A stretch of 64,000 bases of DNA, taken from contig JBLWGC010000033.1 of NCBI GenBank assembly GCA_048772705.1, positions 186,001 through 250,000 of the forward strand, read 5' to 3'. The stretch comes from Leidyana gryllorum EB-2025a. Its lineage: Eukaryota > Protista > Apicomplexa. The notes under the pieces were generated by a model that was not told the DNA's origin, ran no database searches, and saw only the letters and a program-made list of their open reading frames with translations. The position numbers and the translations under genes were made by a program. Shown one piece after another: positions 1 to 42,748 of this stretch. How positions within the stretch are numbered: the stretch's first letter is position 1; the number at the start of each line of letters is the position of its first letter.

Positions 1-597
1 CTCGTAACGGTGGACATCAGGACCGAAGGCTGGGGGAACCACTGCAACCGTTCCTGAAGGTGATTCATAGTCGTCGGGCAGTTCTGGAGCTGGCCGTGCT
101 TCAGGCTCAGTGGCAGCAGAAGGCGCAGCTCTGTCCCGTGGCGGCTCCTGTGCCCTCTCCCGCTGCTGGTTTGATGCCTGAGAAGGGGGGGCTTCTTCCT
201 CTTCCCCTTCCTCTTCCCCTTCCTCTTCCCCTTCCTCTGCTTCTCGCTCGAATTGCGGCCCAGGTGCGTTGCGTGGGGGTTCTATGAACTCAGAGGCTTC
301 GGGCACTGGCCTCACCGGCTGAACCTGAGCTCCCGGTGGAGGGCCCTGATACGCCTCTGTCTCCTCTGCCGGCTCGTCCGCCGGGTAATCTTCCTCCATA
401 GCTTGGCCTTCGTCCTCAGGCATATCCTCACGTTGGGGTTGGGTACCACGCTGCACGACCTGAAGATCGGGGATTGGCATAAACCTGGGTTCCTGCGGGG
501 GCAGCTGTGCTGGCAAAGGTTCAAAACGTGACGACGGCCGGATAGACTGAGCATCGGCCGCAGCCAGAGCCGATACAAAGAAGAAAAGGTGACGCAT
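1..597 (-). CDS. Secreted acidic/Pro-rich protein (5' part; runs off window start)
   Basis: ATG at 597 opens MRHLFFFVSALAAADAQ (signal-peptide-like). The frame stays open for 199 codons to position 1 and includes an EEGE repeat. Not in the ORF track because its stop lies outside the window. Confidence 0.75.
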   Translation of the reverse strand, partial: MRHLFFFVSALAAADAQSIRPSSRFEPLPAQLPPQEPRFMPIPDLQVVQRGTQPQREDMPEDEGQAMEEDYPADEPAEETEAYQGPPPGAQVQPVRPVPEASEFIEPPRNAPGPQFEREAEEGEEEGEEEGEEEEAPPSQASNQQRERAQEPPRDRAAPSAATEPEARPAPELPDDYESPSGTVAVVPPAFGPDVHRYE

Positions 598-3549: not shown

Positions 3550-4949
3550 CTATTGAGCCACCGGATTGGGTTGGAAAGCGCCCAGAATGGGTAGCGATTG
3601 CGCGGCAGTGCTGGAAAGATTCTCATTCATGCTGCAGAGGATGAGCACTTATTGAACAACACTTGAAGATTTTGTTACCTGCGTTGCCACACTTCCGCCA
3701 ACTTGTCTTTCTTCCTGGGCCGACCCCGTTTCCTTTTCACACCGGTCTGGAGCTGGACTGGTAAGCCAAACTCATCTTCCCCTAAATAAGGACCATTTGC
3801 GGGTTGCTCGTCCCCATCAATGTTCATTGGTGGCAATGGAGGACCAGTCTGCCCTGCTTCGCACTGGAGTGGATACTTGCGTTTCTTGTAGACCATGAGC
3901 TCCGCTCTGAGGCGCTGACAAATGGCCAATTTGAGAGCTGCATGGTACCCAAATTTCCTGGAACTAAATGTCGCACAGTGGCGTTTATGAGTATCTTGTG
4001 GAAGCCAACTAGCCACCCATGCCTTAGTGCTCCCGTTCCAACCAACTCCCCTGATTGGACATTGTGGCGGCTTGGTGACAGCTTCGATCTCTTCTATGGT
4101 GGGCTCAAAATCAACTGCAAAGTAGCCCGCTTCTTTGCATCTGGCTAACAATTGATTGACGAGTGGGGCAATAGACTTTTTGATCTCAAGAATTAGGGGG
4201 TGGATGACCAGTTGGGCAAACGATTTTCTGCCTAGAATGATTGGCCCGAAGGTGAGGGAAAGAGAGGTGGTCTTTCTCCGTTTGGCCGGGGGGCCATCAT
4301 CTGGGCTGTCCTCGTTCCAGTCAGGATGGACATCCTCAATTTTCCGCCTCCGACTGGGATCCACCTGAGATATGACATAAACCAGGACCTTCCGGGCGAG
4401 GTTATCGACAGCTGCCTCCCATAGCTCCCGTTGGGGCGCGAGGACGGCGAGCTCGTTGGTGTCGATATCCATGCAGGTAGCGAGGATCTCAACAAAAAGA
4501 CTATCCATCACCACCCCCTTCTCCATGAGATCGCCAACCACTAATTCTTCTCCTGCCCGCCCCGCTTGTAACAAGGAATTAATGTTCATCTGCTGAGCCT
4601 CCAAAACATCTTGCATGCCCACTACAGTACCGGGAACGAACTGAGTGGTTCCTTCTGTCGCGTAAGGATCAACAATCTCTTGATTCGGGCAAGGCTTGCC
4701 AATAGTGTCGTATGGCATGACCAAGCTGAGCGGATCCATCATAGCAACTTGGTCTTGCTGATCTTCGGCCTGCATTGGTACGCCATCATCCTCTCCCCCG
4801 ATAGTACTCTGTAGAAGCTGAGCTGCATAATCTCCAGGTGAATAATTATCATCTATAGGAGTCTCCCATGGGATGTCTGCGGCCATCTGGGACCATTGTG
4901 GGTAAGAGTCATAGTTAAATTCCGATTTGGAGTCATAATAGCCATCCAT
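3550..4949 (-). CDS. ApiAP2 transcription factor with C-terminal AT-hook
   Basis: AP2 signature IRGVGWNGSTKAWVASW...FSSRKFGYHAALKLAICQR; AT-hook KRKRGRPRKK. First ATG at 4949. An intron near 3632-3678 extends the CDS to TAG at 3550. Confidence 0.88.
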
Positions 4950-7359: not shown

Positions 7360-8823
7360 AGAATGCCGGGGAGGAAGCGACTACTGAGTGAGTGGTGTGT
7401 GCTCATGAATAGCGCTAAATACCTGCCGCTACCTGAAGAATGGATTTTGGAGTTTGAGAAGTGAAGATATGGCACTTCAACGATAAGTTTCACTGGCGAA
7501 GGCATGGAAGTCCCCTCCCCCCACCCCCACACTGCGCACTCATCGGTTGCACTTCACCCACTACCTGGGCAGAGTCAAGTATAAATGGCGGCACAAAGGT
7601 GATTACCCATCACCTAATCGTTCTCGGCCGGAAATTAAATTTCTGACTCGTAACTGGCTGGCTTTCCATTCGACAAGAAATGAGGCGAGGTCATTCTCTC
7701 AGGACCAACTGATTTTACTATGCAGCATCATGGCATACTTCCATATAACACTGCTGTTTACTGCGGTGCGGTGCGGTCCCTTCTCTGTATATGCCGAAGA
7801 AGCCTTATATTACTATTGGTCCCTCTCCGCTCGATTTTTGCTTATGAGGGTTTAAGAACGTACGCATACTACAACGCGTGTTGCACACACGAACCGAACA
7901 TACTACACACACATTACGCACATACATACGCCTCACACAATCAATCCACAGCCAGTGGGTGAATCTAAACCTTTCGAGCCTCATTTAACCACCGGAGAGC
8001 CCCCAAGATAATTGTTACAGTGCTTAATGACATTTGGCCGCCGTCATCCAGTCCGTCCAATCATCATTTATCCATTTGTGGGATCCTGACCTGCGGCCAT
8101 TGTATCCCATTTAATCATTCCGCCGCCTCCTGCCCCCGTGTTGCCTCGACTTGTGTAATATTGTTGCTGTTCACAATTGGTTATTTCTTGATTGATTGGG
8201 CGATGCCTTTCATTATAAAGGTCATTCATCTATTTTATTATCAACAGCTCTTCGGCTCCTACTTGGCTGCCTTCTGGTCACGCCATCCCGTTCCGGACTT
8301 TGTGCCTCCCTTACGACTGTAGACCAACCAAGTTATTCAGAATGACCGATCCGTGGACCAAGAGCCCCTGTGTTTTGCTAGTGTGACAATCACAATTTGA
8401 CAGCTGTTTAACTACGCGGCAGTTGTTCAGCCGGTGTGACACTGGCTGCCAATTGAAGCTCACGCAAAACGCCTCTATGATCTCCCACTCTGTACCAAAA
8501 CAATATGGGTAAGCACCATCAAGTTGTCGTGTTCCCCGTCTCGTGCCGAACACACGTGTGCGATGCGCCAAAGTAAAAGTTTGTGAGCAGTACGTCTTCA
8601 CGGCGGCCACAAACCACACTCGATTGCTATGAATGGCTGCGACACCCTCAGCTGGCTAATTTCTTATTAAACACATCTCCACCCCCATTGTGATCATCAC
8701 GGAATGCAAGTGTGTGCGACGATATTTTAATGGAATTATTGGGGCAGGATCGCTGCACGATGTAAACAGAACGATATAGGAGTGTACTGTATACTGATCC
8801 AATCTGCGCACCCCATTGCAGTC

Positions 8824-10336: not shown

Positions 10337-11623
10337 TTAAGCGGTATACTCGATGTGAAGCTTCTTCGGGCGGTCGACAACCTTCACAACCACAGCTGCC
10401 GTCTTGCACTCAGTGGTACACTCGATTTCGGGGCACTCGTCAGTGCTGCCCGGCGACGTAGTGGTAGTTGCCACGGTAGTAGTAGTCGTGGGTTCTGGTG
10501 TGGTAGTGGTGGAAGTGGTGGTTGTCGGCTCGGTGGTTGTTGTGGTAGTAGTTGTAGGCTGAGCGGTGGTGGTAGTAGTGGTAGTGGTAGGCTCAGTCGT
10601 GGTGGTTGTGGTGGTGGTAGTGGTAGGCTCAGTCGTGGTGGTAGTGGTAGGCTCAGTCGTGGTGGTAGTGGTGGTAGTGGTAGGCTCAGTCGTGGTGGTA
10701 GTGGTGGTAGTAGTGGTAGTAGTAGGCTGAGTAGTAGTGGTGGTTGGCACAGTGGTGGTGGTGGACGGGGCAGGGGTCGTCGGTCCGGCAGTGGTGGTGG
10801 TAGTCGCGCAAGCCGTCTCAGTCACGGACTTGATGACCTTCAAAACGCTAGTCATGATGTCGGAAGAATCCTCAGCAATGTACTGATAGAAGTCAGATGG
10901 CTGGCCGAGGAGATCTTCGTTGACCCATTGCCAGGCGGCGGTAATATTCTGCCAGGCAGGCGTCAAGATGGCAAGATAGATGTTCTTGGCTTTCAAGGCT
11001 GCAGCCATCTGGTCGGCACTCGGATATTCGTAGTTGCGGCAGGAGAGGTCAACATTGGGGAGACTGATGGTACCGGGGTTAGCCGGGAGACCCTGAGGAA
11101 CAGTCTCGAATTGAGACAGCAGGGCCATGTCACCCGGCAGATGCGGGGGGGCATCAGTGGACATGATGACAACATGGGCACCAACACCGTTGCCAGCGCG
11201 AGTGTCCTCGAGGATATCGTGCCAGCCGACAGAGGGGTCTTGAGCAATGTCAATCAAAGCCTGGAACTGAGCCTCGGGGAGATCACCACCACCAGAAGCA
11301 TACAGCTTGTCGTAGTCGGCTTTGAAAGTAGCAACTTCGCCAGTCAGGGCACCATTGAGCTTATAACAGAAGTCAGAGTCTTGTTGGCCGAGGGGATAGT
11401 AGGGTTTGTCTTTGAACTCGGCGACACCAAAGTAAGACTCGGGATTCTGCTCCAAGATGGCAGCAACCATATCGTCAATCTGGCTGACAACGATGGGCAA
11501 ATCCTTCTCGAAAGATCCAGTAGTGTCTTGAAGAAACATCACATCAATGGGCAGATAACATTCCTCTTCAGCTTGCACGCCGATGACAGCAGCCACCAAG
11601 CAGAATGCGCCAGAGAACTTCAT
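10337..11623 (-). CDS. Secreted integrin-beta-like vWA domain protein with Thr-rich mucin stalk (copy 1)
   Basis: Signal peptide; MIDAS-like DTTGS; FKDKP, GGDLPEA, STDAPPH and EYPS motifs typical of the integrin beta I-like domain; (T)nEP repeats; no TM helix. Confidence 0.9.
   Translation of the reverse strand: MKFSGAFCLVAAVIGVQAEEECYLPIDVMFLQDTTGSFEKDLPIVVSQIDDMVAAILEQNPESYFGVAEFKDKPYYPLGQQDSDFCYKLNGALTGEVATFKADYDKLYASGGGDLPEAQFQALIDIAQDPSVGWHDILEDTRAGNGVGAHVVIMSTDAPPHLPGDMALLSQFETVPQGLPANPGTISLPNVDLSCRNYEYPSADQMAAALKAKNIYLAILTPAWQNITAAWQWVNEDLLGQPSDFYQYIAEDSSDIMTSVLKVIKSVTETACATTTTTAGPTTPAPSTTTTVPTTTTTQPTTTTTTTTTTTTEPTTTTTTTTTEPTTTTTTEPTTTTTTTTTTEPTTTTTTTTAQPTTTTTTTTEPTTTTSTTTTPEPTTTTTVATTTTSPGSTDECPEIECTTECKTAAVVVKVVDRPKKLHIEYTA
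10460..10805 (-). repeat. Coding ACN (Thr) tandem repeat, mucin stalk of vWA copy 1
   Basis: GGT/AGT triplet runs on + strand, punctuated by GGCTC (EP). Confidence 0.9.
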
Positions 11624-26724: not shown

Positions 26725-29700
26725 TCAGGCCGGTACGCTTTCTGTGACTGCAAGTAGCAGGTTAGTAGCTGTAAAGTGACATTTCCGAGAAAAAGCACCA
26801 TTAAAGTCATATTCAAGTAGGCAGCCACGCTTTCGGGCGTCTTTGAGAGAGTTTATGACCTCCGCATTCTGGTCATAGACACATAGATCGGCAGCCGCAA
26901 TGCTCGGCTCTTCAATTCCACGACCCGCCCGTGATGCTGACAAGAAGATGGGGAGAGAGACACTGAAACTACTCACCTGTACCACATAGATCCCACAGCT
27001 GAAGCATCCCATTGGCAGTCGTACAAGCCAATAGTTCACTGCCGTGTGCCGGCGCCAAACTAGTCGCCATATCATCCTTTCCCCCCACTGTGATTGTATT
27101 CATCATCTTTCCTGCCACCAAGTCCCAGATCTGGACCACTGGCGACATGCTGCCGGAGAGGGCCAGATACCTTCCATTGGGTGCAAACTCAATCAATCGG
27201 GGGCACTGGATGCCGTTGATCAACCCCACAATGTCAGGAACCCGTGGATCCCATAGTCTGATACGATCATCGCTCGCTCCGGTGGCCATCAGTATGGAAT
27301 TCTGGTGAATCCTAACAACCTCGACTTGACCGCCGTGACGAGTGAAGATCCGAATTGGGTTGACTCGATCCATCGACCACACACATGCTGCTCGATCTAC
27401 GTGACCCGTGAGGAACTCGTAGCCATAAGTATCGACATCCAGCGAGAGAATCGCTGAACCACCTGCAGAGAGAGCGATCATAGAGAGAGAAAGAGAAGGA
27501 GAGAAGTGGATATATAACATTGGGCCCGGCCGCGGCCGCCGCCGCTCGGGCAAACTTAAACTCACTTCGATAGGAATGCAGACAATACGAATTATTGATA
27601 TCCCATAAGCACATCCGTCCATCGTAGGAGGTCGATACGCCCATTTGCACATTGCCGCCGCTGAGGAAAGGGCTGAGAAACTCGAATCCCGTGACGGGGA
27701 GTTCGTGTTCCGCCAAACACTTGGGTTTATAGGGTTGCTGGGCGAGCATGGGCTCTTCTAACCGTTCCAAGAACCCTTCGAGATCTTCAGGATTATTTGG
27801 CGCAATCTCAGCGAAGGCCTGATCAATTTTCGGACCCGATATACAGATCTTATGTCCTCCCATATTGACAGTGACTCCGGAGGACTCGAGTTGATTACTC
27901 TCTTCCTGGCGTGTGGCTTCCGGATCGCTGGCGCGCTGCTGGGCGTGTAATAAGAGCCAGGGATTGAAAACAGCTCTTTTGTACAGATCTGTACACCGCG
28001 ACCACTGGGCCTCCTGCAGATCGAATATCCAAACTGACCGACTGTTCCGATCCGAGACTCCGATGAGACGGCCGTACTCCTTCTCCAACGAGATCACGTC
28101 GCAGTCAGCAGGTGGACCCTTTCCAATGCCGGGCCACGTCGTGACTGTGTTTATATTGAGGGAGACTATACTGGGCAACTTGGTCAGATTTATGTCATCG
28201 CGACCCAACAGCGCTTCATAGCTACGATTCTTCGCCATACGATGTCTCCATTCAAGCGCGGGATGGTTCCCGACGGGCAGTCGATATAACTGCAACAATT
28301 CTTTCTGCAGCACTTTGGCTGTGGGTTCGGCTTTAGGAATGCGATCGTCTCCGGCTTCGTCGAAGGGGTCAGGAGGCAGGCCGCACAGCGCCACCAGAGA
28401 TGGCGTTACGATGGCTCCACCAACGTCGCGCATTTGGGGCCCTTTCCAGTGGTAAGACGTCAGTGTCGCTACAATGCCCGCCGTTTGCGCGCTGCCTCCA
28501 TACCCGTCATTCGGCATCTCAAATGACAGTCGCTTCTGCAGGATGTCCAAAATAACTGTCTCATTATCCAATGTCAGACGAGTTGTCAATAGTTTACGGG
28601 TCAATAAGTCAACCTGCGAGGTGATGATCAAAGTGTGACGCGCCGCCAACTCACCTTGATGTGAAAACGCTCTCCACGGAGAACCCGCAGCACAAAAGGA
28701 CAGTCCTTCAGCACTGCTAAGCTCTTCACTCGCCGCATCTCGAGGATCTGTGGAGAGAAAGAGAGAGAGAATTGGTCAAACAAAGAGTAAGAGAGTGAAA
28801 GAGTGAGCTCACCTCGTCATGATGTGTGGGATAATGTCCTTCGCCAAATTTGCGTAAGAACTGTTCCGCTCGGCTGAGAGACACCGAAATCAGACGGATC
28901 CAGAGCTCAACAAAGACAACGAATGCAATCTCTCTCATTGCGTGACGCACACTATCCACGGCTTGGAGAGTCCAGTTCCAAAAGTTGCCGTAGATGGCGG
29001 CGAAGTTCCTATAGCAGGCGAGAGGGTTCTCCTTTGCGTTCAATCGTCGAACCGCGGCCACTAACTGTGGTCCCACAGTACCTCGTGCAGACGTGACAAC
29101 ATTGTCACTGTGTCCTAAGCTTCCCCGATTGCAGTCTTCTTCAATGAGATTGGCCATGGCGTTATATCCAGTTTTCTTGAGCACTCTTAATGCATTCTGC
29201 AAATCCATGGACAGATTGTTGCTGTTGTTGGTGGTGTTAGTATTGTTGTTGGTGCTGCCGGTGCTGCTGTTGTTGGTGTTGGAAGGGGGAGCGATGGTGT
29301 TCGGAGGGGGCACCGAATCAACTTTGACAGGTGGCGGGCGTTGGTGGATTTGCCAGGGGGACGCCGTATGCGGGTACTGTTGTGGCGTGGATTGAGACGC
29401 TGGGCTTTCGGAGGGAGGAGGCTGTTGTTGTGGGTTTTGACTTGGAGGAGCAGCTTGTTGTTGTTGTGTGGGCCAAGTACTCCATACATCGTGAGCGGCC
29501 GGTTGCGCGTCCGACACGGGGGGCTGGGACTGAGCCGCAGCCTGCGGATTATTCTGACTTGAGGAGGCATTCTCAGTGCTCGCAGCTTGGCTGGCTGGCT
29601 GCTGGGAATATCCAACTTGACCAACCGCCCAAAAGTCATTGGGGTTGCTTGGTGCAGGTGGCCTGGTGACGGGGGACGGGTTGCCTGGGGCTTGAGCATT

Positions 29701-30126
29701 TGGCGGCTGACGAGTGGCGGTTTGCGGATAGACGTGTGGGTATTGGGCGGCCACTGGGAGTCCAGTTCGAGGGTCATACGCTTGGGCTTTGGGCTGTGGC
29801 TGTTGAGTAGGCCTTGGGGGCATGAAGCGCATATTTGGGTGCTGGCGTAGCCCAGGCGAGTGCTTGCTCGGGTCTCCAGGCGGTGATTGTTGCGGGGCAA
29901 CCTGTATGAACTGAGAGTCCCTCCGATATTGCGGAGGGGGATATTGATTCGAGCCCGGCGGCGGCTGCATTGGATAAAATGCAGACGGCGATGATTGCAC
30001 TGGCGGCGGCAACCGCCCGAACTGCTGCTGCACATTCCCTTGAGCTACATATTGGCCCGACTTGGAGCCCTCTGGAGGCGGTTGAGATGTATCAGGGACC
30101 TCCTGCCCCAGACTGTTTTTATTCAT
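26725..30126 (-). CDS. TAF5: TFIID subunit TAF5-like (Q/P-rich N-terminus, LisH, NTD2, WD40), multi-exon
   Basis: LisH-like NALRVLKKTGYNAMANLIEED; NTD2-like YGNFWNW...IAFVVFVELWIRL...AEQFLRKF; WD40 RIFTRH...IHQNSILMATGASDDRIRLWD; several GT-AG introns, e.g. 27463-27566. Confidence 0.82.
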
Positions 30127-30750
30127 CCACACTAGTTTTCAGCCAAACACCCCCTCTACTGTGATGACGCAGAGGTTCAACAGTATCAATGGAACTGCAT
30201 CAAACCTTTAGTAACTCCCACAACGCTCAGTCCTCACCCTTCAAGTAGTTGCGCAAAGCGTACAGAGCCAGGGACACTTGAAATCGCAGCCCCTCCCCAT
30301 ACGCTGGCTTGTCCAAGTTGTCTGCAGTCAATCAATGTTGAAAATGGCGACCACTTAGAACCAGTTAGGACGGACACACAGACACACACAAGGCGGCGAT
30401 TAATCACTAACACACAACCACACGGGGGCCGACGAACGGTAGACAGACAGCGGCAGGCAGGGCAGCGGGACCGGGAAGACCAGTTCGACCGACCGACCCT
30501 CTTGGCTACAACGAGTCTCTCGCGGGGGCGGATTCGGGCGGCCCTCTTCTTCCACTCTCACTCTCTCTCTCACTCTCACTCTCTCAGGCTTCATCACACA
30601 TCGAGTCAAGGAAGTGCTTACATTTAGCCAGAACTCGGCGGTCGTTGAGAATGGCAAGTGCGTTGGCCAGGAGCACTGAGGCTTCTAGCAGGCTCCAAAG
30701 TGAGATGCCCATTGTTTTTTGCTCTGTTTCTCGAGCGACGGCTAACTAGT

Positions 30751-31722
30751 CTACTTAGCAGCTTCACCACCAGTTGACCCAGCGGCAGCAGCCCGCTGGG
30801 CCTCAATGGCCTCTGCTTTCCGGTGCAGCTGCAATTTCCAGGCCCGAACTTCGGCGGCGAATTCCCTCCAACTGGTGCCAGCAATACGAGGGGTCTGGGG
30901 ATCAGTGGGTTTGCGTTCGCTCGGAGGCACAGCCTCTATGTACAGTAGGTACTCAGGGGTTGCCTTGCACCTTGCGATTTGCTTGAACCTTCCTTCACTC
31001 GGTGGTGGTCGAACTTTCGGTACTGGACAACGAGGGGACGGGGGCGGAGGGGGAGGAGGAGGTGGAGGGGGCGGAGGAGCGAAGTGGGAAGGATGCATTA
31101 CGGGGCCGGTACCGCCAATTAAATGGCAGGCGAGGCCATTAGTGAGACGGTCAGTCAGAGTCTGGGCATCTGCCATGGCCAGGGTGATCAAGTAGCTGCG
31201 CCAAACGCGCAAGCTGAGGCCGTTGATCTGGATGAGGTCTTCGATGGAGGCTTGCCACTCCGAGGCCGACCACTGGGAGGGCGTGGCTGTCCATTGATGG
31301 TAGTAGTTTGTGTATGGCAATTGCTGTGTCGTTGGGTATTGCTGTTGAGGAGGCGGGGGTGAGGGGGGTTTCAGTGCGGCAGCCATTGCTGCCTCCACAG
31401 CCTCAGTCTGCCGATCGTTTACATTGAGGTCCCCATTCTGGAAAGTCTTTTGCAAGGCATCGAGCGTAGTCGCAAGGAGTGCTAGGTCGTATGAAGAAAT
31501 AGATTCGTTCGCAGCGGACTGAGGAAGCTTGGCCTCAGGTTGTCTAAACGCCTGGGGGGGGGCCGATATGGTGTTATCCAACCTCAATAATTCTCCGGCC
31601 ACATTGGCTGGGGCGCTGTTTTCGGACCTCTTCTTGCGGCGCAGTAAGGTAGTCACATCTAGTGCTGATGACTGATTGTCAAGGCTCGCGAGCCCACTCT
31701 CAATATCCGTCATCTTAGTCAT
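30751..31722 (-). CDS. SLBP: Histone stem-loop binding protein (SLBP RNA-binding domain)
   Basis: RFKQIARCKATPEYLLYIEAVPPSERKPTDPQTP...SWREFAAEVRAWKLQLH matches the SLBP pattern RxKQIxxxKxTxxYxxY...PxTP...SxRxW/F...WKxxLH. First ATG at 31722. Confidence 0.82.
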   Translation of the reverse strand: MTKMTDIESGLASLDNQSSALDVTTLLRRKKRSENSAPANVAGELLRLDNTISAPPQAFRQPEAKLPQSAANESISSYDLALLATTLDALQKTFQNGDLNVNDRQTEAVEAAMAAALKPPSPPPPQQQYPTTQQLPYTNYYHQWTATPSQWSASEWQASIEDLIQINGLSLRVWRSYLITLAMADAQTLTDRLTNGLACHLIGGTGPVMHPSHFAPPPPPPPPPPPPPSPRCPVPKVRPPPSEGRFKQIARCKATPEYLLYIEAVPPSERKPTDPQTPRIAGTSWREFAAEVRAWKLQLHRKAEAIEAQRAAAAGSTGGEAAK

Positions 31723-33202
31723 CAGCACAATTTTTCTTTCTTCCGGCCAGACGTGCTAGACCCAAGCTTCCTTTTGGCGCGACGCTCCAACCTTTCGGCG
31801 AACGAGCTCTCGGACAGGGTTACTCTGGCGGCCGCCTCTGCTTTCGCGATTGCTTGTGTGCGCGCGCGTGTCTCCGCGTGATCTATGCCTCCTAACTCCT
31901 CCACCTTCCACCCTAGTTTCCCCTCAATCGCCGTCATCTGCAGCAAAGACTATCTGTCGGTCTATCAAACTCTCTCCTCACCCGTTGAAAAGCTATGTCT
32001 TTCTCCACATCCCCCCGAACTAACTCAGGAGTTACCATAGTCAGCGCGATTCCGGGCCGTCCAGCACGCGCACACCGACCTACGCGGTGGCAATAGTCTT
32101 CATAGAACTTTGGGACATTCATGTTGATCACGAACTCCACTGTAGGCAGATCGAGTCCCCTCGAAGCAACATCGGTGGCCACCAAGATCCTGGCGGTCCC
32201 TTGTTTGAACTTGCCCAGACTGGCCACGCGGACCCGCGGCTCCTGCAGACTGTTCAGGCACACAACAGCAAACTTGAGATTCAAGAGGGTTTCTCTCAGA
32301 AGCTCGCAGTCTTCGATCGTCCGGACGAATATGATGCCTCTATTAGCGCCCGAGAACCGGGGCATTTTATTCAGAATGTACTCCAAGAAATGAAGACGCG
32401 CAATCTTTGGGACAATGAGCATCGTATGCTTCAGCTCCTTGACTTGCTGTCCCTCGGCCACTATGTCATGGACGATCAGAGGCGTGTTGTCCCGTTTGAA
32501 CATCTCAATCACCCGCTCCTTCATGTCCCCCAAGGTAGCGGTGAACAACAAGGTTTGTCTTAATGGGCCCAAAGCGTTGAGTACCTGAGGTGGAAAGAGG
32601 ATTTAAAATGATTAGAAGAGAGGCAGAAGAGGGAGAGGGAGCATTAGGGCCTCTCAATGTCTAAAATTAAGACTTACATCTTGTACTTCCTCGTCCATCG
32701 GCGATTGGACCAGACGATCTACTTCGTCAAAGACACCAAATTTGACGCGGGCGAAGCGTCTTCGGACGTCCGGATCCTCAACCATCTCTCTTAATCTCCC
32801 CGGAGTTCCAATGACGATGTGAGTTCCATCGAGAATCTCACTCTTCTGCTTGGTGGCGTTGGCGCCACCACATATAAGGGATGCTCGAATTCCCACTCGC
32901 TCGCCAAACAATATGAATTGGTCCATAACCTGCGCCGCCAGTTCACGAGTCGGACTGAGAATGACAGCGAGGCACATTTGGGGTTTATTCTTGTACCAAT
33001 TCAGAATCGGCAGCATATAACATGCCGTTTTACCCGTGCCGGTCGGTGCGACTCCCAGCACGTCTGAGCGGGTATTAACTCCATTAACCACATCGCCTTC
33101 CAGGATGTCTGGTATACACAGCGACTGAATGGGGGTGGGTTGAGTGACTTTGCATTTATGGCAGTGCTCTACCAGCCAGTCATCCAGCTTCAGGCCGTCC
33201 AT
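31722..33202 (-). CDS. DEAD-box RNA helicase, DDX49/DBP8-like, 3 exons
   Basis: PTPIQ, APTGTGKT, PTRELA, GTPGR, DEVD, FTAT, VASRGLD, HRVGRCAR; two introns near 32587-32675 and 31938-32020. Confidence 0.9.
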
Positions 33203-33232
33203 ATCGGTTTCAAACTTTGCTAAAAAAAGTAT

Positions 33233-33466
33233 TCAACAGCAGCAATTCGGCATCTTCTTCTGCTTGGCAAAAGGTCGTGGTGGCTCCTGAGGGTTCTCGG
33301 CACCCTGCTGACAAAGCTCCTGTTGTTGCTTGTTGATCTCCCACAGATAACCTCCAACAGGAAATACTGTTCTCTGGATGGGTACATCAGGATCGTTTAA
33401 CCATTGCTCCTGGATGGAGCGTTTCGGGACATAATTCAAAGTGGCACAGTCTTGATAGGGATGCAT
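33233..33466 (-). CDS. Small 77-aa protein with a polybasic-CCC C-terminus
   Basis: ATG-initiated ORF filling the gap; ends KQKKMPNCCC-stop. Confidence 0.6.
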   Translation of the reverse strand: MHPYQDCATLNYVPKRSIQEQWLNDPDVPIQRTVFPVGGYLWEINKQQQELCQQGAENPQEPPRPFAKQKKMPNCCC

Positions 33467-42136: not shown

Positions 42137-42748
42137 ATGCAGTATAAGGACGCCAAGCTTTGGTTTGCTATTTCCCTCACCGTTCAGCTTGGGCTGACTC
42201 TGGCGCGCTCTCTGTGGCGGTTTGACGCCGTCCATGTGGTCTCTTACATCCCATGTGCGATTGGATTCTACGCAGTTAGAGGCAGAAATCCATTTCGAAT
42301 GATTCTTTACCTCTGTGTTAGCTGCATTCACCTCGCAGAATTAGGGAGAGCAATATTAGAGTGTGAAACCAACGCCAAGAAACTCGCAAACACACTCTCC
42401 GCCGCAGAAGCCATCGCCCGCGGACACTCGCCGTTGGCCCTGGCTGGAGCTGAACCACTCCCCGCCAGCACAGCGTCCGTTACTGTTCGCGACATTCGCA
42501 TCGATGCCCTCCTCGCTTGCCTTACTCTGTTCCTCGGAGTCATTCCGAGCATTCTGACCGGAATCGAGCTGCAAGCGCAGTACTTTGAAATCTTCGAAAA
42601 CGATCTCGCTTGCGCGACCAATCCACCGGAAGCCGAGATTGTTCCCGATCACGAGAACGTTGCAGTCACTGCTGATGCCTTCCCTCTCTACTCAGGGGCC
42701 GCTACCATGACTGTGCATGTCGATCCCAACACAACCACCAGAAATTGA
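42137..42748 (+). CDS. Hypothetical multi-pass membrane protein
   Basis: 203 aa with about 4 hydrophobic segments. Confidence 0.7.
   Translation: MQYKDAKLWFAISLTVQLGLTLARSLWRFDAVHVVSYIPCAIGFYAVRGRNPFRMILYLCVSCIHLAELGRAILECETNAKKLANTLSAAEAIARGHSPLALAGAEPLPASTASVTVRDIRIDALLACLTLFLGVIPSILTGIELQAQYFEIFENDLACATNPPEAEIVPDHENVAVTADAFPLYSGAATMTVHVDPNTTTRN

Follow-up and report, generated by a model that had tools for sequence, protein, structure and literature searches.

Five genes on the minus strand of the 64,000-nt window (the whole stretch of DNA analysed) follow one another in the order 77-aa ORF, DEAD-box helicase, SLBP, Yos1-like gene and TAF5-NTD2-like gene, with successive spacers of 30, -1, 38 and 12 nt. 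These spacers leave no room for a promoter and a poly(A) site together with UTRs at both ends of the mRNAs. At the negative spacer the helicase stop codon and the first SLBP ATG have one A in common (TGATG, 31720-31724). We consider it reasonably probable that the genes are expressed from separate overlapping mRNAs with ends inside neighbouring genes, as a result of extreme gene packing, and not as a bacterial-style operon. An earlier sequence-only reading had listed a run of three genes; their order and coordinates were confirmed, and the run was found to extend through the Yos1-like and TAF5-NTD2-like genes. Of the two explanations it offered, promoters and poly(A) sites placed within the coding sequence of adjacent genes are favoured here over a polycistron with reinitiation, on the basis of contigs carrying SLBP only and of ATG-free leaders. 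The genome is that of a gregarine-type apicomplexan (15.5 Mb, intron-containing), and all features below are on the minus strand. All homology searches were performed exon by exon, with no spliced protein joined.

The helicase is encoded by three exons. Exon 1 (32678-33202; 175 codons) contains DEAD-box domain 1 (Pfam DEAD, 3.5e-34), in which motif II reads DEVD instead of DEAD; the best solved relative was DDX47 (1.6e-27), and identity to the full-length orthologue P0005 was 49% from residue 1. Intron 1 (32585-32677; 93 nt, GTAAGT...AG) has a counterpart at the same position in the related contig L021 and none in L019, a contig of a distant relative. Exon 2 (31982-32584; 201 codons with the donor at 31981) contains the C-terminal domain (Pfam Helicase_C, 1.4e-24) with 47% identity to P0005 through '...AFQR', and two other in-frame GT donors are present at 32035 and 32008. 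Intron 2 (31938-31981; 44 nt, GTGAGG...TGCAG) forms a junction that agrees with both P0005 and L021, the exon 2/3 boundary AFQR/MTAIE corresponding to NTNRMAYIQ in P0005. Exon 3 (31722-31937) encodes a basic C-terminal tail of 71 codons followed by the TGA at 31724-31722. As it aligns to the C-terminus of P0005 (E 1e-7) and the tail ends level with four orthologues in a multiple alignment (A2), this TGA is the helicase stop. A different last exon had been the alternative named by the sequence-only reading, and these same two alignments establish exon 3 as truly the helicase tail. The best named matches of the gregarine orthologue P0153 were DDX49, DBP8 and RH36, and the predicted product of the gene is a DDX49/Dbp8-type DEAD-box helicase.

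The SLBP-type gene is a single exon (30751-31722) of 323 codons from the ATG at 31722, with a TAG stop at 30753-30751. Its ORF matched the Pfam family SLBP_RNA_bind (PF15247; 1.8e-12, 47.5 bits against a cut-off of 27) over profile positions 8-67 of 70, and its gregarine homologues P0001 and P0002 were matched at 1.8e-27 and 8.6e-22, respectively (alignments A1 and A3). The RNA-binding domain is near-invariant among the gregarine homologues and, by domain match, the product is predicted to be a histone-mRNA-binding protein. The ATG at 31722-31720 is the first of the ORF, whose open part upstream of it extends no further than 31755, and the block shared with the SLBPs of gregarines begins approximately six residues past this ATG; SLBP therefore starts at this ATG or at the in-frame ATG 31713, 9 nt further on. 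The sharing of the A of TGA 31724-31722 with ATG 31722-31720, noted earlier from the letters, thus holds, with orthologues fixing the stop of the helicase and the region in which SLBP starts. Fusion of the helicase with SLBP through a programmed -1 frameshift was rejected, since the 11 open codons before the ATG have no slippery heptamer and SLBP proteins are free-standing in relatives.

The TGATG was unchanged in the contigs of another strain, with no difference listed at these positions. Given a stop codon that ends in A, a one-base overlap is expected by chance about once in 16. In L019 the same helicase-SLBP order was present with TAATG at the equivalent place. The ATG of this pentanucleotide is probably the L019 SLBP start, judging from where it falls in alignment A1, from its reading frame and from the presence of canonical splice signals; by BLAST alone, exon 1 of the L019 SLBP matched P0154 with an E of 0.57. 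Pieces of the L019 helicase tail gave no BLAST match to P0153 and were placed by multiple alignment A2. Between L019 and the present genome, strong divergence is seen in the tail of the helicase and at the N-terminus of SLBP, and the one-base overlap has probably been kept. The sequence-only reading had proposed a comparison with related genomes, and the probable TAATG in L019 points to an overlap presumably kept to the base. This probable conservation in a distant relative speaks against chance as the source of the overlap at this one junction. A scan of metagenomes for gregarine SLBP loci gave no confirmed match, and the contig carrying P0010 belongs to a different organism, where the helicase-SLBP arrangement was absent. 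P0154 has 15 extra N-terminal residues; the idea that they overlap the tail of the Gregarina sp. Poly1 helicase was discarded, the codons being incompatible.

An overlap retained exactly in a distant relative is also what selection for translational coupling would produce, which counts against separate mRNAs. On such a reading, ribosomes on a dicistronic helicase-SLBP mRNA would terminate at the UGA and resume at the AUG that overlaps it, a process known from caliciviruses, influenza B segment 7 and the hypovirus CHV1. The base common to stop and start fits the geometry of these systems, where the two lie within 20 nt after a long ORF (PMC10275272; PMC2699510), and so does the probable TAATG of L019, found despite diverged protein ends. 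We nevertheless rate this mechanism as very unlikely. The viral systems depend on an upstream element with RNA structure, and folding predicted no such element before either overlap (z-scores of +0.99 and +1.13 in the window and +0.23 and -0.19 in L019; 200 shuffles each). Even with such an element, reinitiation after an ORF of about 447 codons yields only 3-20% (PMC10275272), whereas the RNA carrying SLBP is the more abundant. A variant in which the overlap, kept as UGAUG or UAAUG across gregarines while the protein ends diverged, would be a TURBS-free reinitiation site on a cellular dicistron is given equally little credence.

Downstream of SLBP lies a Yos1/IER3IP1-like gene (30139-30712; exons 30712-30622, 30321-30238 and 30194-30139, stop TGA 30141-30139), with its ATG at 30712, 38 nt past the SLBP stop, and introns of 300 and 43 nt. 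Exon 1 matched PF08571 (5.4e-7, 30.2 bits against a cut-off of 27) over profile positions 1-26 of 81. The two downstream exons were assigned by visual inspection, and a search with the 27-aa exon 2 found nothing. The 43-nt Yos1 intron 2 is closely resembled by the 44-nt intron 2 of the helicase. A Q/P-rich TAF5-NTD2-like gene follows (28726-30126; Pfam TFIID_NTD2, 4.5e-6, 27.4 bits against a cut-off of 22), its ATG at 30126 placed 12 nt past the Yos1 stop. At the other end of the run, the 77-aa ORF (33233-33466; ATG 33466, stop TGA 33235-33233), taken from the ORF listing and ending in ...CCC, had no family or relative in any search, Pfam included, and its codon score of 0.135 per codon is above the 90th percentile of ORFs of 70-100 codons. 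It is possibly a small gene, or else a chance ORF or a uORF in the helicase 5' region. Its stop was placed 30 nt ahead of the helicase ATG (33202) by the sequence-only reading, and these coordinates agree with the sequence. The intervening spacer (33203-33232) contains an oligo-T tract, and oligo-T tracts precede the helicase ATG in L019, L020 and L021 as well.

Tight spacing is found elsewhere in this genome, with further tandem spacers of 1-46 nt beside the Pfam-identified genes NAP and DDAH. In a 221-kb gene map based on codon usage, which can be read only qualitatively as weak codon bias makes it too coarse for reliable spacer statistics, tandem spacers were often below 60 nt and divergent spacers were all at least 284 nt. 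In L019 a divergent VPS4-like gene has its ATG no more than 17 nt away from that of the helicase, so that 5' ends there must be buried in the neighbouring gene. Two further candidates for tight junctions were dropped. An ATGA overlap at L011:869 proved to join two pieces of one FAD_binding_2 gene, matching profile positions 41-300 and then 306-383, and the junction before NAP (a 1-nt gap here and 2 nt in L019) has dissimilar upstream ORFs (E 7) and was not established as a second conserved case. For annotators, apparent stop/start overlaps in this genome mix true gene boundaries with intron or frameshift junctions within single genes.

RNA-derived contigs from four runs in three studies were mapped to a 4.2-kb stretch, and all of them fell within 30601-31797. 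None lay on the helicase, the 77-aa ORF or the flanking genes, and none joined the helicase body to SLBP. These are k-mer contigs at a depth of 2-8, not reads or mapped transcript ends, and of the four runs only one is on record as RNA; read-through or dicistronic molecules of low abundance would be invisible in them. The coverage of SLBP only indicates that the contigs derive from RNA in which SLBP is more abundant than the helicase, and a helicase left uncovered where SLBP is covered, with no contig linking them, speaks against a dicistronic messenger. Two SLBP contigs, each from a different study, have their upstream ends (X1 record 3 at 31797; X7, an RNA-seq run, record 22 at 31791) 70-75 nt before the ATG, inside helicase exon 3, with no loose non-genomic letters at either end. 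The interval 31791-31797 is a candidate for the SLBP transcription start zone, or for a lower bound on one; contig ends may reflect low coverage and cannot show a start, and the other end of the X7 contig is certainly no transcript end. High-depth contigs of 31 nt on a proline-codon repeat (31045-31081), together with X1 record 2, come from other organisms, probably the host.

The same colinearity bears on trans-splicing of a spliced leader, as in the operons of nematodes, tunicates, kinetoplastids and dinoflagellates, in which a precursor would be cut into capped monocistrons at AG acceptors before each ATG. Short spacers that are rich in pyrimidines or contain AG precede the ATGs and would suit such a mechanism; examples are the oligo-T tract and AG ahead of the helicase ATG and a CTAAG before ATG 31713. 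The SLBP contigs, however, match the genome colinearly over the 70-75 nt that precede the ATG and carry no foreign leader, and the 5' end of L020, a spliced contig of 1,556 nt from a relative with the helicase alone, is genome-like over 61 nt, with no shared leader. Spliced-leader trans-splicing is not known from apicomplexans, and we regard this explanation as extremely improbable.

Relatives provide further transcript contigs. Gregarina sp. Poly1 has one contig for each gene, NODE_1713 (3.5 kb, coverage 13) with the helicase and NODE_527 (7.7 kb, coverage 211) with SLBP; this placement on separate contigs with a 16-fold difference in coverage goes against reinitiation on a common mRNA, as weak evidence because genomic adjacency is not established in that species. 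The helicase transcript contig of Protomagalhaensia is 1.6 kb. The SLBP homologues of two relatives are on multi-ORF transcript contigs of 4.6 and 7.7 kb (named _p2 and _p5), which would also be expected from polycistrons and to that extent oppose the favoured reading of separate mRNAs. In polycistrons of the kind reported for Cryptosporidium parvum, at least two of these five genes would share an mRNA, with or without monocistrons beside it, and be translated by leaky scanning or reinitiation. Such an arrangement would accord with five same-strand genes at these spacings, with long-read evidence from a related lineage (10.1101/2025.01.17.633476) and with two contigs (X1 record 1 and X2 record 4) that bridge the SLBP stop and the Yos1 start. 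A contig spanning two genes does not show a single transcript, however, and the bridging contigs are equally expected from overlapping UTRs. Coverage is uneven along the run, same-strand runs in this genome comprise only 2-6 genes and the coding strand switches often, and leaky scanning to SLBP is impossible because the helicase holds many AUGs. On balance, shared mRNAs of this kind appear unlikely.

The sequences before the gene starts argue for separate mRNAs. The SLBP ATG is preceded by 215 nt that lack ATG in all frames (a length in the 2.4% tail of the distribution), and helicase exon 3 has none in any frame after its first codon; an ATG-free stretch of this length is not required for reinitiation. 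Upstream of the Yos1 start the nearest ATG is 386 nt away, a length reached by 0.3% of ATG-to-ATG gaps in coding sequence, and the ATG-free stretch (30713-31095) consists of the 3' coding part of SLBP and the 38-nt spacer. Across 41 starts the median upstream ATG-free distance was 69 nt compared to 43 nt expected. The motif GAAAAATT (31729-31736) lies in the last codons of the helicase, 6 nt before the SLBP ATG; four of its six copies in 442 kb are followed, after 6-32 nt, by an ATG with an open frame of 150-798 codons. Start-proximal A-runs and this motif mark individual gene starts, that of SLBP included, within upstream coding sequence. A de novo search for enriched 7-mers upstream of the 41 starts returned A-runs only, the sample being too small for promoter discovery. 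TTCGCCG was set aside as a general element, being present at only SLBP and Yos1 among the 41 starts, with one partial match in addition; at these two genes it adjoins contig ends. A promoter motif of general occurrence thus did not emerge, which counts against separate mRNAs.

Taken together with the contig ends, exon 3 likely serves also as the 5' leader and promoter region of SLBP. We infer that SLBP transcription would begin inside this exon, at least about 75 nt upstream of the ATG if the contig ends are real, or alternatively beside GAAAAATT, 6 nt upstream. Under either start ATG 31722 would be the first AUG on the SLBP mRNA and would be reached by ordinary scanning; a functional dicistron is presumed to be absent. 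The 3' end of the helicase mRNA would fall within SLBP, with a corresponding overlap between the transcripts of SLBP and Yos1. The TGATG may then represent the end point of spacer loss, subsequently frozen: once formed, the overlap would be held because any change must keep both the stop and the start, and the exchange of TGA and TAA is a single transition that preserves the two.

Overlapping transcription units are described in microsporidia and nucleomorphs, according to the passages of PMC3629993 that cite Williams 2005 and Corradi 2008, and polycistronic transcripts are reported for C. parvum (10.1101/2025.01.17.633476). Overlapping units and polycistrons are thus known elsewhere, which tempers the earlier suggestion of a notable expression system; what stands is that no description of overlapping transcription or polycistrons was found for gregarines in the literature searched, the words 'intergenic' and 'polycistron' both being absent from the Porospora genome paper. 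As presented in those passages, the compacted genomes resemble the present locus in spacers too short for promoters and terminators and in stable gene order, and their transcripts start in the upstream or end in the downstream gene with one protein per mRNA, as proposed here. They differ in that the present genome is a gregarine genome of 15.5 Mb with introns, is not organelle-like, and has a stop and a start that share a base, a feature probably conserved between distant species. C. parvum likewise belongs to a compact, related apicomplexan lineage with extensive UTR overlap, for which compaction has been proposed as the cause (10.1101/2025.01.17.633476), but there long reads span at least two ORFs, whereas here short-read contigs argue for a separate SLBP mRNA and spacers fall to zero or below. 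The UAAUG and AUGA sites with TURBS in caliciviruses, influenza B and CHV1 have identical pentanucleotide geometry, out of frame and after a long ORF (PMC10275272; PMC2793014; PMC2699510); in contrast, the present junction joins cellular genes of unrelated function, with no predicted structured element and no linking contig. Bacterial TGATG/ATGA coupling has the same sequence configuration, but eukaryotic ribosomes have no Shine-Dalgarno-guided restart, the genes here have introns, and their predicted functions, ribosome biogenesis and histone mRNA binding, are unrelated.

Gregarines are the least studied large branch of the Apicomplexa, and the literature consulted is silent on the transcription of their genes. 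This locus offers a concrete case, with five unrelated genes packed -1 to 38 nt apart and one junction probably conserved to the base. If start sites do lie in upstream coding sequence, promoter elements and protein-coding constraints would share the same DNA, with GAAAAATT as one candidate for such an element. Neighbouring genes would thereby become locked to one another, which would account for the conservation of their order.

The minus strand of the window carries a run of same-strand genes (28726-33466) read from the sequence. A 77-aa ORF (ATG 33466, stop TGA 33235-33233) is followed after a 30-nt spacer by a DEAD-box helicase identified by Pfam and orthologues (ATG 33202; exons 33202-32678, 32584-31982 and 31937-31722), and then by an SLBP-type gene (first ATG 31722-31720, stop TAG 30753-30751; PF15247, 47.5 bits against the Pfam cut-off of 27). 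The sequence-only reading had described these three genes, and the helicase/SLBP overlap and the ORF 30 nt upstream of the helicase were borne out by sequence and orthologue alignments. The run extends past SLBP to a Yos1/IER3IP1-like gene, which starts at 30712, 38 nt past the SLBP stop, and ends at TGA 30141-30139 (Pfam on exon 1, 30.2 bits against a cut-off of 27; exons 2 and 3 read by eye), and to a Q/P-rich gene with a TFIID NTD2 domain match, which starts at 30126, 12 nt past the Yos1 TGA. The 77-aa ORF, a possible gene, had no relative in Pfam, NCBIfam, Atlas or a word search; its codon usage lies above the 90th percentile for size-matched ORFs. In the Yos1-like gene, a GA/GAGT-rich simple repeat (30543-30592, minus strand) lies in the first intron (300 nt), and sequencing contigs break at it.

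Helicase searches, all run on single exons rather than the joined coding sequence, matched DEAD in exon 1 (3.5e-34) and Helicase_C in exon 2 (1.4e-24) in Pfam. The nearest solved relative is DDX47, the closest helicases are gregarine, and the best named relatives of the gregarine orthologue P0153 are DDX49, Dbp8 and RH36. The last junction is important because the choice of splice fixes the stop codon. The acceptor AG 31939-31938 has three possible in-frame GT donors (32035, 32008, 31981); donor 31981 gives a 44-nt intron, much like the 43-nt second intron of the Yos1 gene, and its junction (...AFQR/MTAIE) reproduces ...NTNRMAYIQ in the full-length orthologue P0005 and NTNR/MRAIE in L021, a contig of a relative. 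Because the last exon (71 codons) matches the C-terminal tail of P0005 (E 1e-7) and ends flush with the orthologues in a five-species alignment, TGA 31724-31722 is the helicase stop, as originally proposed. The three donors lie exactly 27 nt apart with a common acceptor at 31938 (31982-32036, minus strand), and alternative splicing could produce isoforms that differ, immediately past the last helicase motif, by 9 or 18 residues. Motif II is degenerate in gregarine DDX49 orthologues, being DEVD here (32730-32741, minus strand), DECD in P0153 and L021, and DEFD in L019, a contig of another relative, unlike the DEAD of P0005; motif III here is TAT in place of SAT. Intron 1 measures 93 nt here (32585-32677) and 206 nt in L021 (2264-2469, read by eye), and is missing from L019; the tail is interrupted by a further intron in L019 (34 nt, 10561-10594) and L021 (from 3292) but not here. 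The orthologues differ by intron gain and loss.

The first ATG of SLBP has its A in common with the helicase TGA, as the sequence confirms. Since the open SLBP frame reaches no further upstream than 31755, and since the block common to gregarine SLBPs (GL.SL...LDVTTLL.RK.RS) opens about six residues after ATG 31722, translation starts at this ATG or at the in-frame ATG 31713, with start-context scores of -0.2 and 2.0, respectively, in a genome whose start context is weak. SLBP relatives came solely from transcripts of two eugregarines, Blabericola migrator and Gregarina sp. Poly1; with the gregarine helicase matches, this places the organism among gregarine-type apicomplexans. The 50-95-residue N-terminal extension seen in Blabericola, Gregarina sp. 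Poly1 and L019 is missing from the protein encoded here (31660-31722, minus strand).

Probable conservation of the overlap was found in L019, an 11.3-kb Logan contig that is genomic because it is unspliced. Its source is a relative further removed than Gregarina sp. Poly1 (identity over helicase exon 1 is 44%, compared with 59% for the latter) with gene order partly as in the window: NAP upstream, then helicase, then SLBP. Its helicase tail follows the 34-nt intron at a position common to L021, runs collinear with the orthologues and stops flush with them at TAA 10694-10696. ATG 10696-10698 shares the A of this TAA and opens 32 codons up to a GTAAGT donor, from which a 31-nt intron joins the SLBP body in frame (E 0.003 against P0154, a transcript-derived gregarine homologue); the alternative ATG 10805 falls within this intron. 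The 32 codons resemble the P0154 N-terminus (...D.K.ISW..DL...DED) and were placed correctly in the multiple alignment of SLBPs, but by BLAST alone they were not significant (E 0.57). The one-base overlap is therefore only probably conserved; if so, it outlasted change in both flanking protein ends, because the SLBP extension is absent here. The 31-nt intron lies in the region of that extension, and L019 introns measure 31-34 nt.

Upstream in L019, a divergent VPS4-like AAA gene (AAA 9.2e-22, MIT match weak) has its ATG (9281, minus strand) no more than 17 nt away from the helicase ATG (9299, plus strand); its alternative ATG, 9338, would overlap the helicase. In the window, the place of this gene is taken by the 77-aa ORF and a coiled-coil gene. 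The head-to-head pair has no promoter room. Polycistrony fails to account for such a pair, which is explained only if the 5' ends lie within the gene next door. Polycistronic transcripts, reported with extensive UTR overlap in C. parvum (10.1101/2025.01.17.633476), are considered unlikely in the window; leaky scanning would be unworkable through a helicase full of AUGs.

A stretch of 4,201 nt was compared with sequencing runs, in which all matches were contigs, unable to prove transcript ends. The matching runs differ from the window by ~2.5% and resemble transcriptomes of the host in which the parasite makes up a small part. All contigs of this organism (four runs, three studies) lie within 30601-31797, covering SLBP and its flanks, with none on the helicase, 77-aa ORF, divergent coiled-coil gene or fifth gene. 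We read these low-depth contigs as RNA because random DNA coverage would not yield this SLBP-only pattern, and take SLBP RNA to be more abundant than helicase RNA. Two contigs from different studies end upstream at 31797 and 31791, 70-75 nt before the SLBP ATG and in helicase exon 3. Both lack non-genomic letters, which speaks against a spliced leader; we consider a spliced-leader operon highly improbable. Two contigs span the region from the SLBP stop to Yos1 exon 1, and one of them extends into the Yos1 intron. In Gregarina sp. Poly1 the helicase lies on NODE_1713 (3.5 kb, coverage 13) and SLBP on NODE_527 (7.7 kb, coverage 211); the Protomagalhaensia helicase contig is 1.6 kb, and L020, a 1,556-nt spliced contig, holds a helicase alone with flanks of 61 nt (5') and 49 nt (3'). 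A proline-codon repeat (31045-31081) is also covered by contigs of other organisms, which were set aside.

The 215 nt before the SLBP ATG, the entire last helicase exon past its first codon, contain no ATG in any frame (2.4% of coding ATG gaps are as long), nor do the 386 nt before the Yos1 ATG (0.3% tail); depletion over 41 starts was milder (median 69 nt against 43 expected). These stretches point the same way, as the trace that selection would be expected to leave where AUGs are disfavoured in a 5' leader. True termination-reinitiation at the overlap would also be expected to conserve it, but does not require an ATG-free stretch. Viral UAAUG/AUGA systems depend on a structured element (PMC10275272), and the RNA upstream of both overlaps was not more stable than shuffled controls (z +0.99, +1.13, +0.23, -0.19); we regard this mechanism as doubtful, even more so than polycistronic transcripts. 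The 25 nt upstream include a run of five or more A in 20% of starts, compared with ~1% for internal Met codons. The octamer GAAAAATT has six copies in 442 kb (both strands), four of them 6-32 nt upstream of an ATG opening a long ORF (798, 323, 312 and 150 codons), SLBP and DDAH among them: 31729-31736 (minus strand) in the window, encoded in the last helicase codons, and, in further stretches of this genome, L011 ~3806-3813 (minus strand) and L007 ~7611-7618 and 484-491 (minus strand). It may act as a core-promoter, initiator or start-context element, and together with the A-runs suggests that gene starts carry their own local mark.

In 221 kb of the assembly (15.5 Mb, 237 contigs), tandem spacers of 1-46 nt adjoin Pfam-identified genes such as NAP and DDAH, and a crude gene map held no divergent spacer below 284 nt. 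An apparent ATGA overlap at L011:869 was rejected as a gene boundary since both pieces belong to one FAD_binding_2 gene in two frames (L011:546-1747, minus strand; contig 33, 180546-181747; profile positions 41-300, then 306-383), whose frame change would be a tiny intron, frameshift or assembly error; apparent overlaps in this genome are thus not all gene boundaries. Two long plus-strand ORFs, neither with a Pfam match, overlap by 32 nt (42717-42748) when the first ATG of the downstream ORF, 42717, is taken as its start; they may truly overlap, or the second may begin further downstream.

Of the two expression systems first proposed, we consider polycistrony with termination-reinitiation the less likely and lean towards buried starts and ends, in view of the low-depth contigs, the ATG-free leaders and the missing fold. 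SLBP transcription would begin within the last helicase exon and the helicase mRNA would end within SLBP, as separate overlapping transcription units. The one-base overlap may be the final stage of spacer loss, then fixed by double constraint, a TGA-to-TAA change preserving stop and start alike. Weak points of this reading are the contig depth and the conserved overlap, which coupling would predict as well. The nearest known phenomenon is the overlapping gene expression of compacted genomes, of which we found no earlier description for gregarines; the Porospora genome paper mentions neither intergenic spacing nor polycistrons. The specialist interest lies in a stop/start overlap probably kept to the base between distant species.
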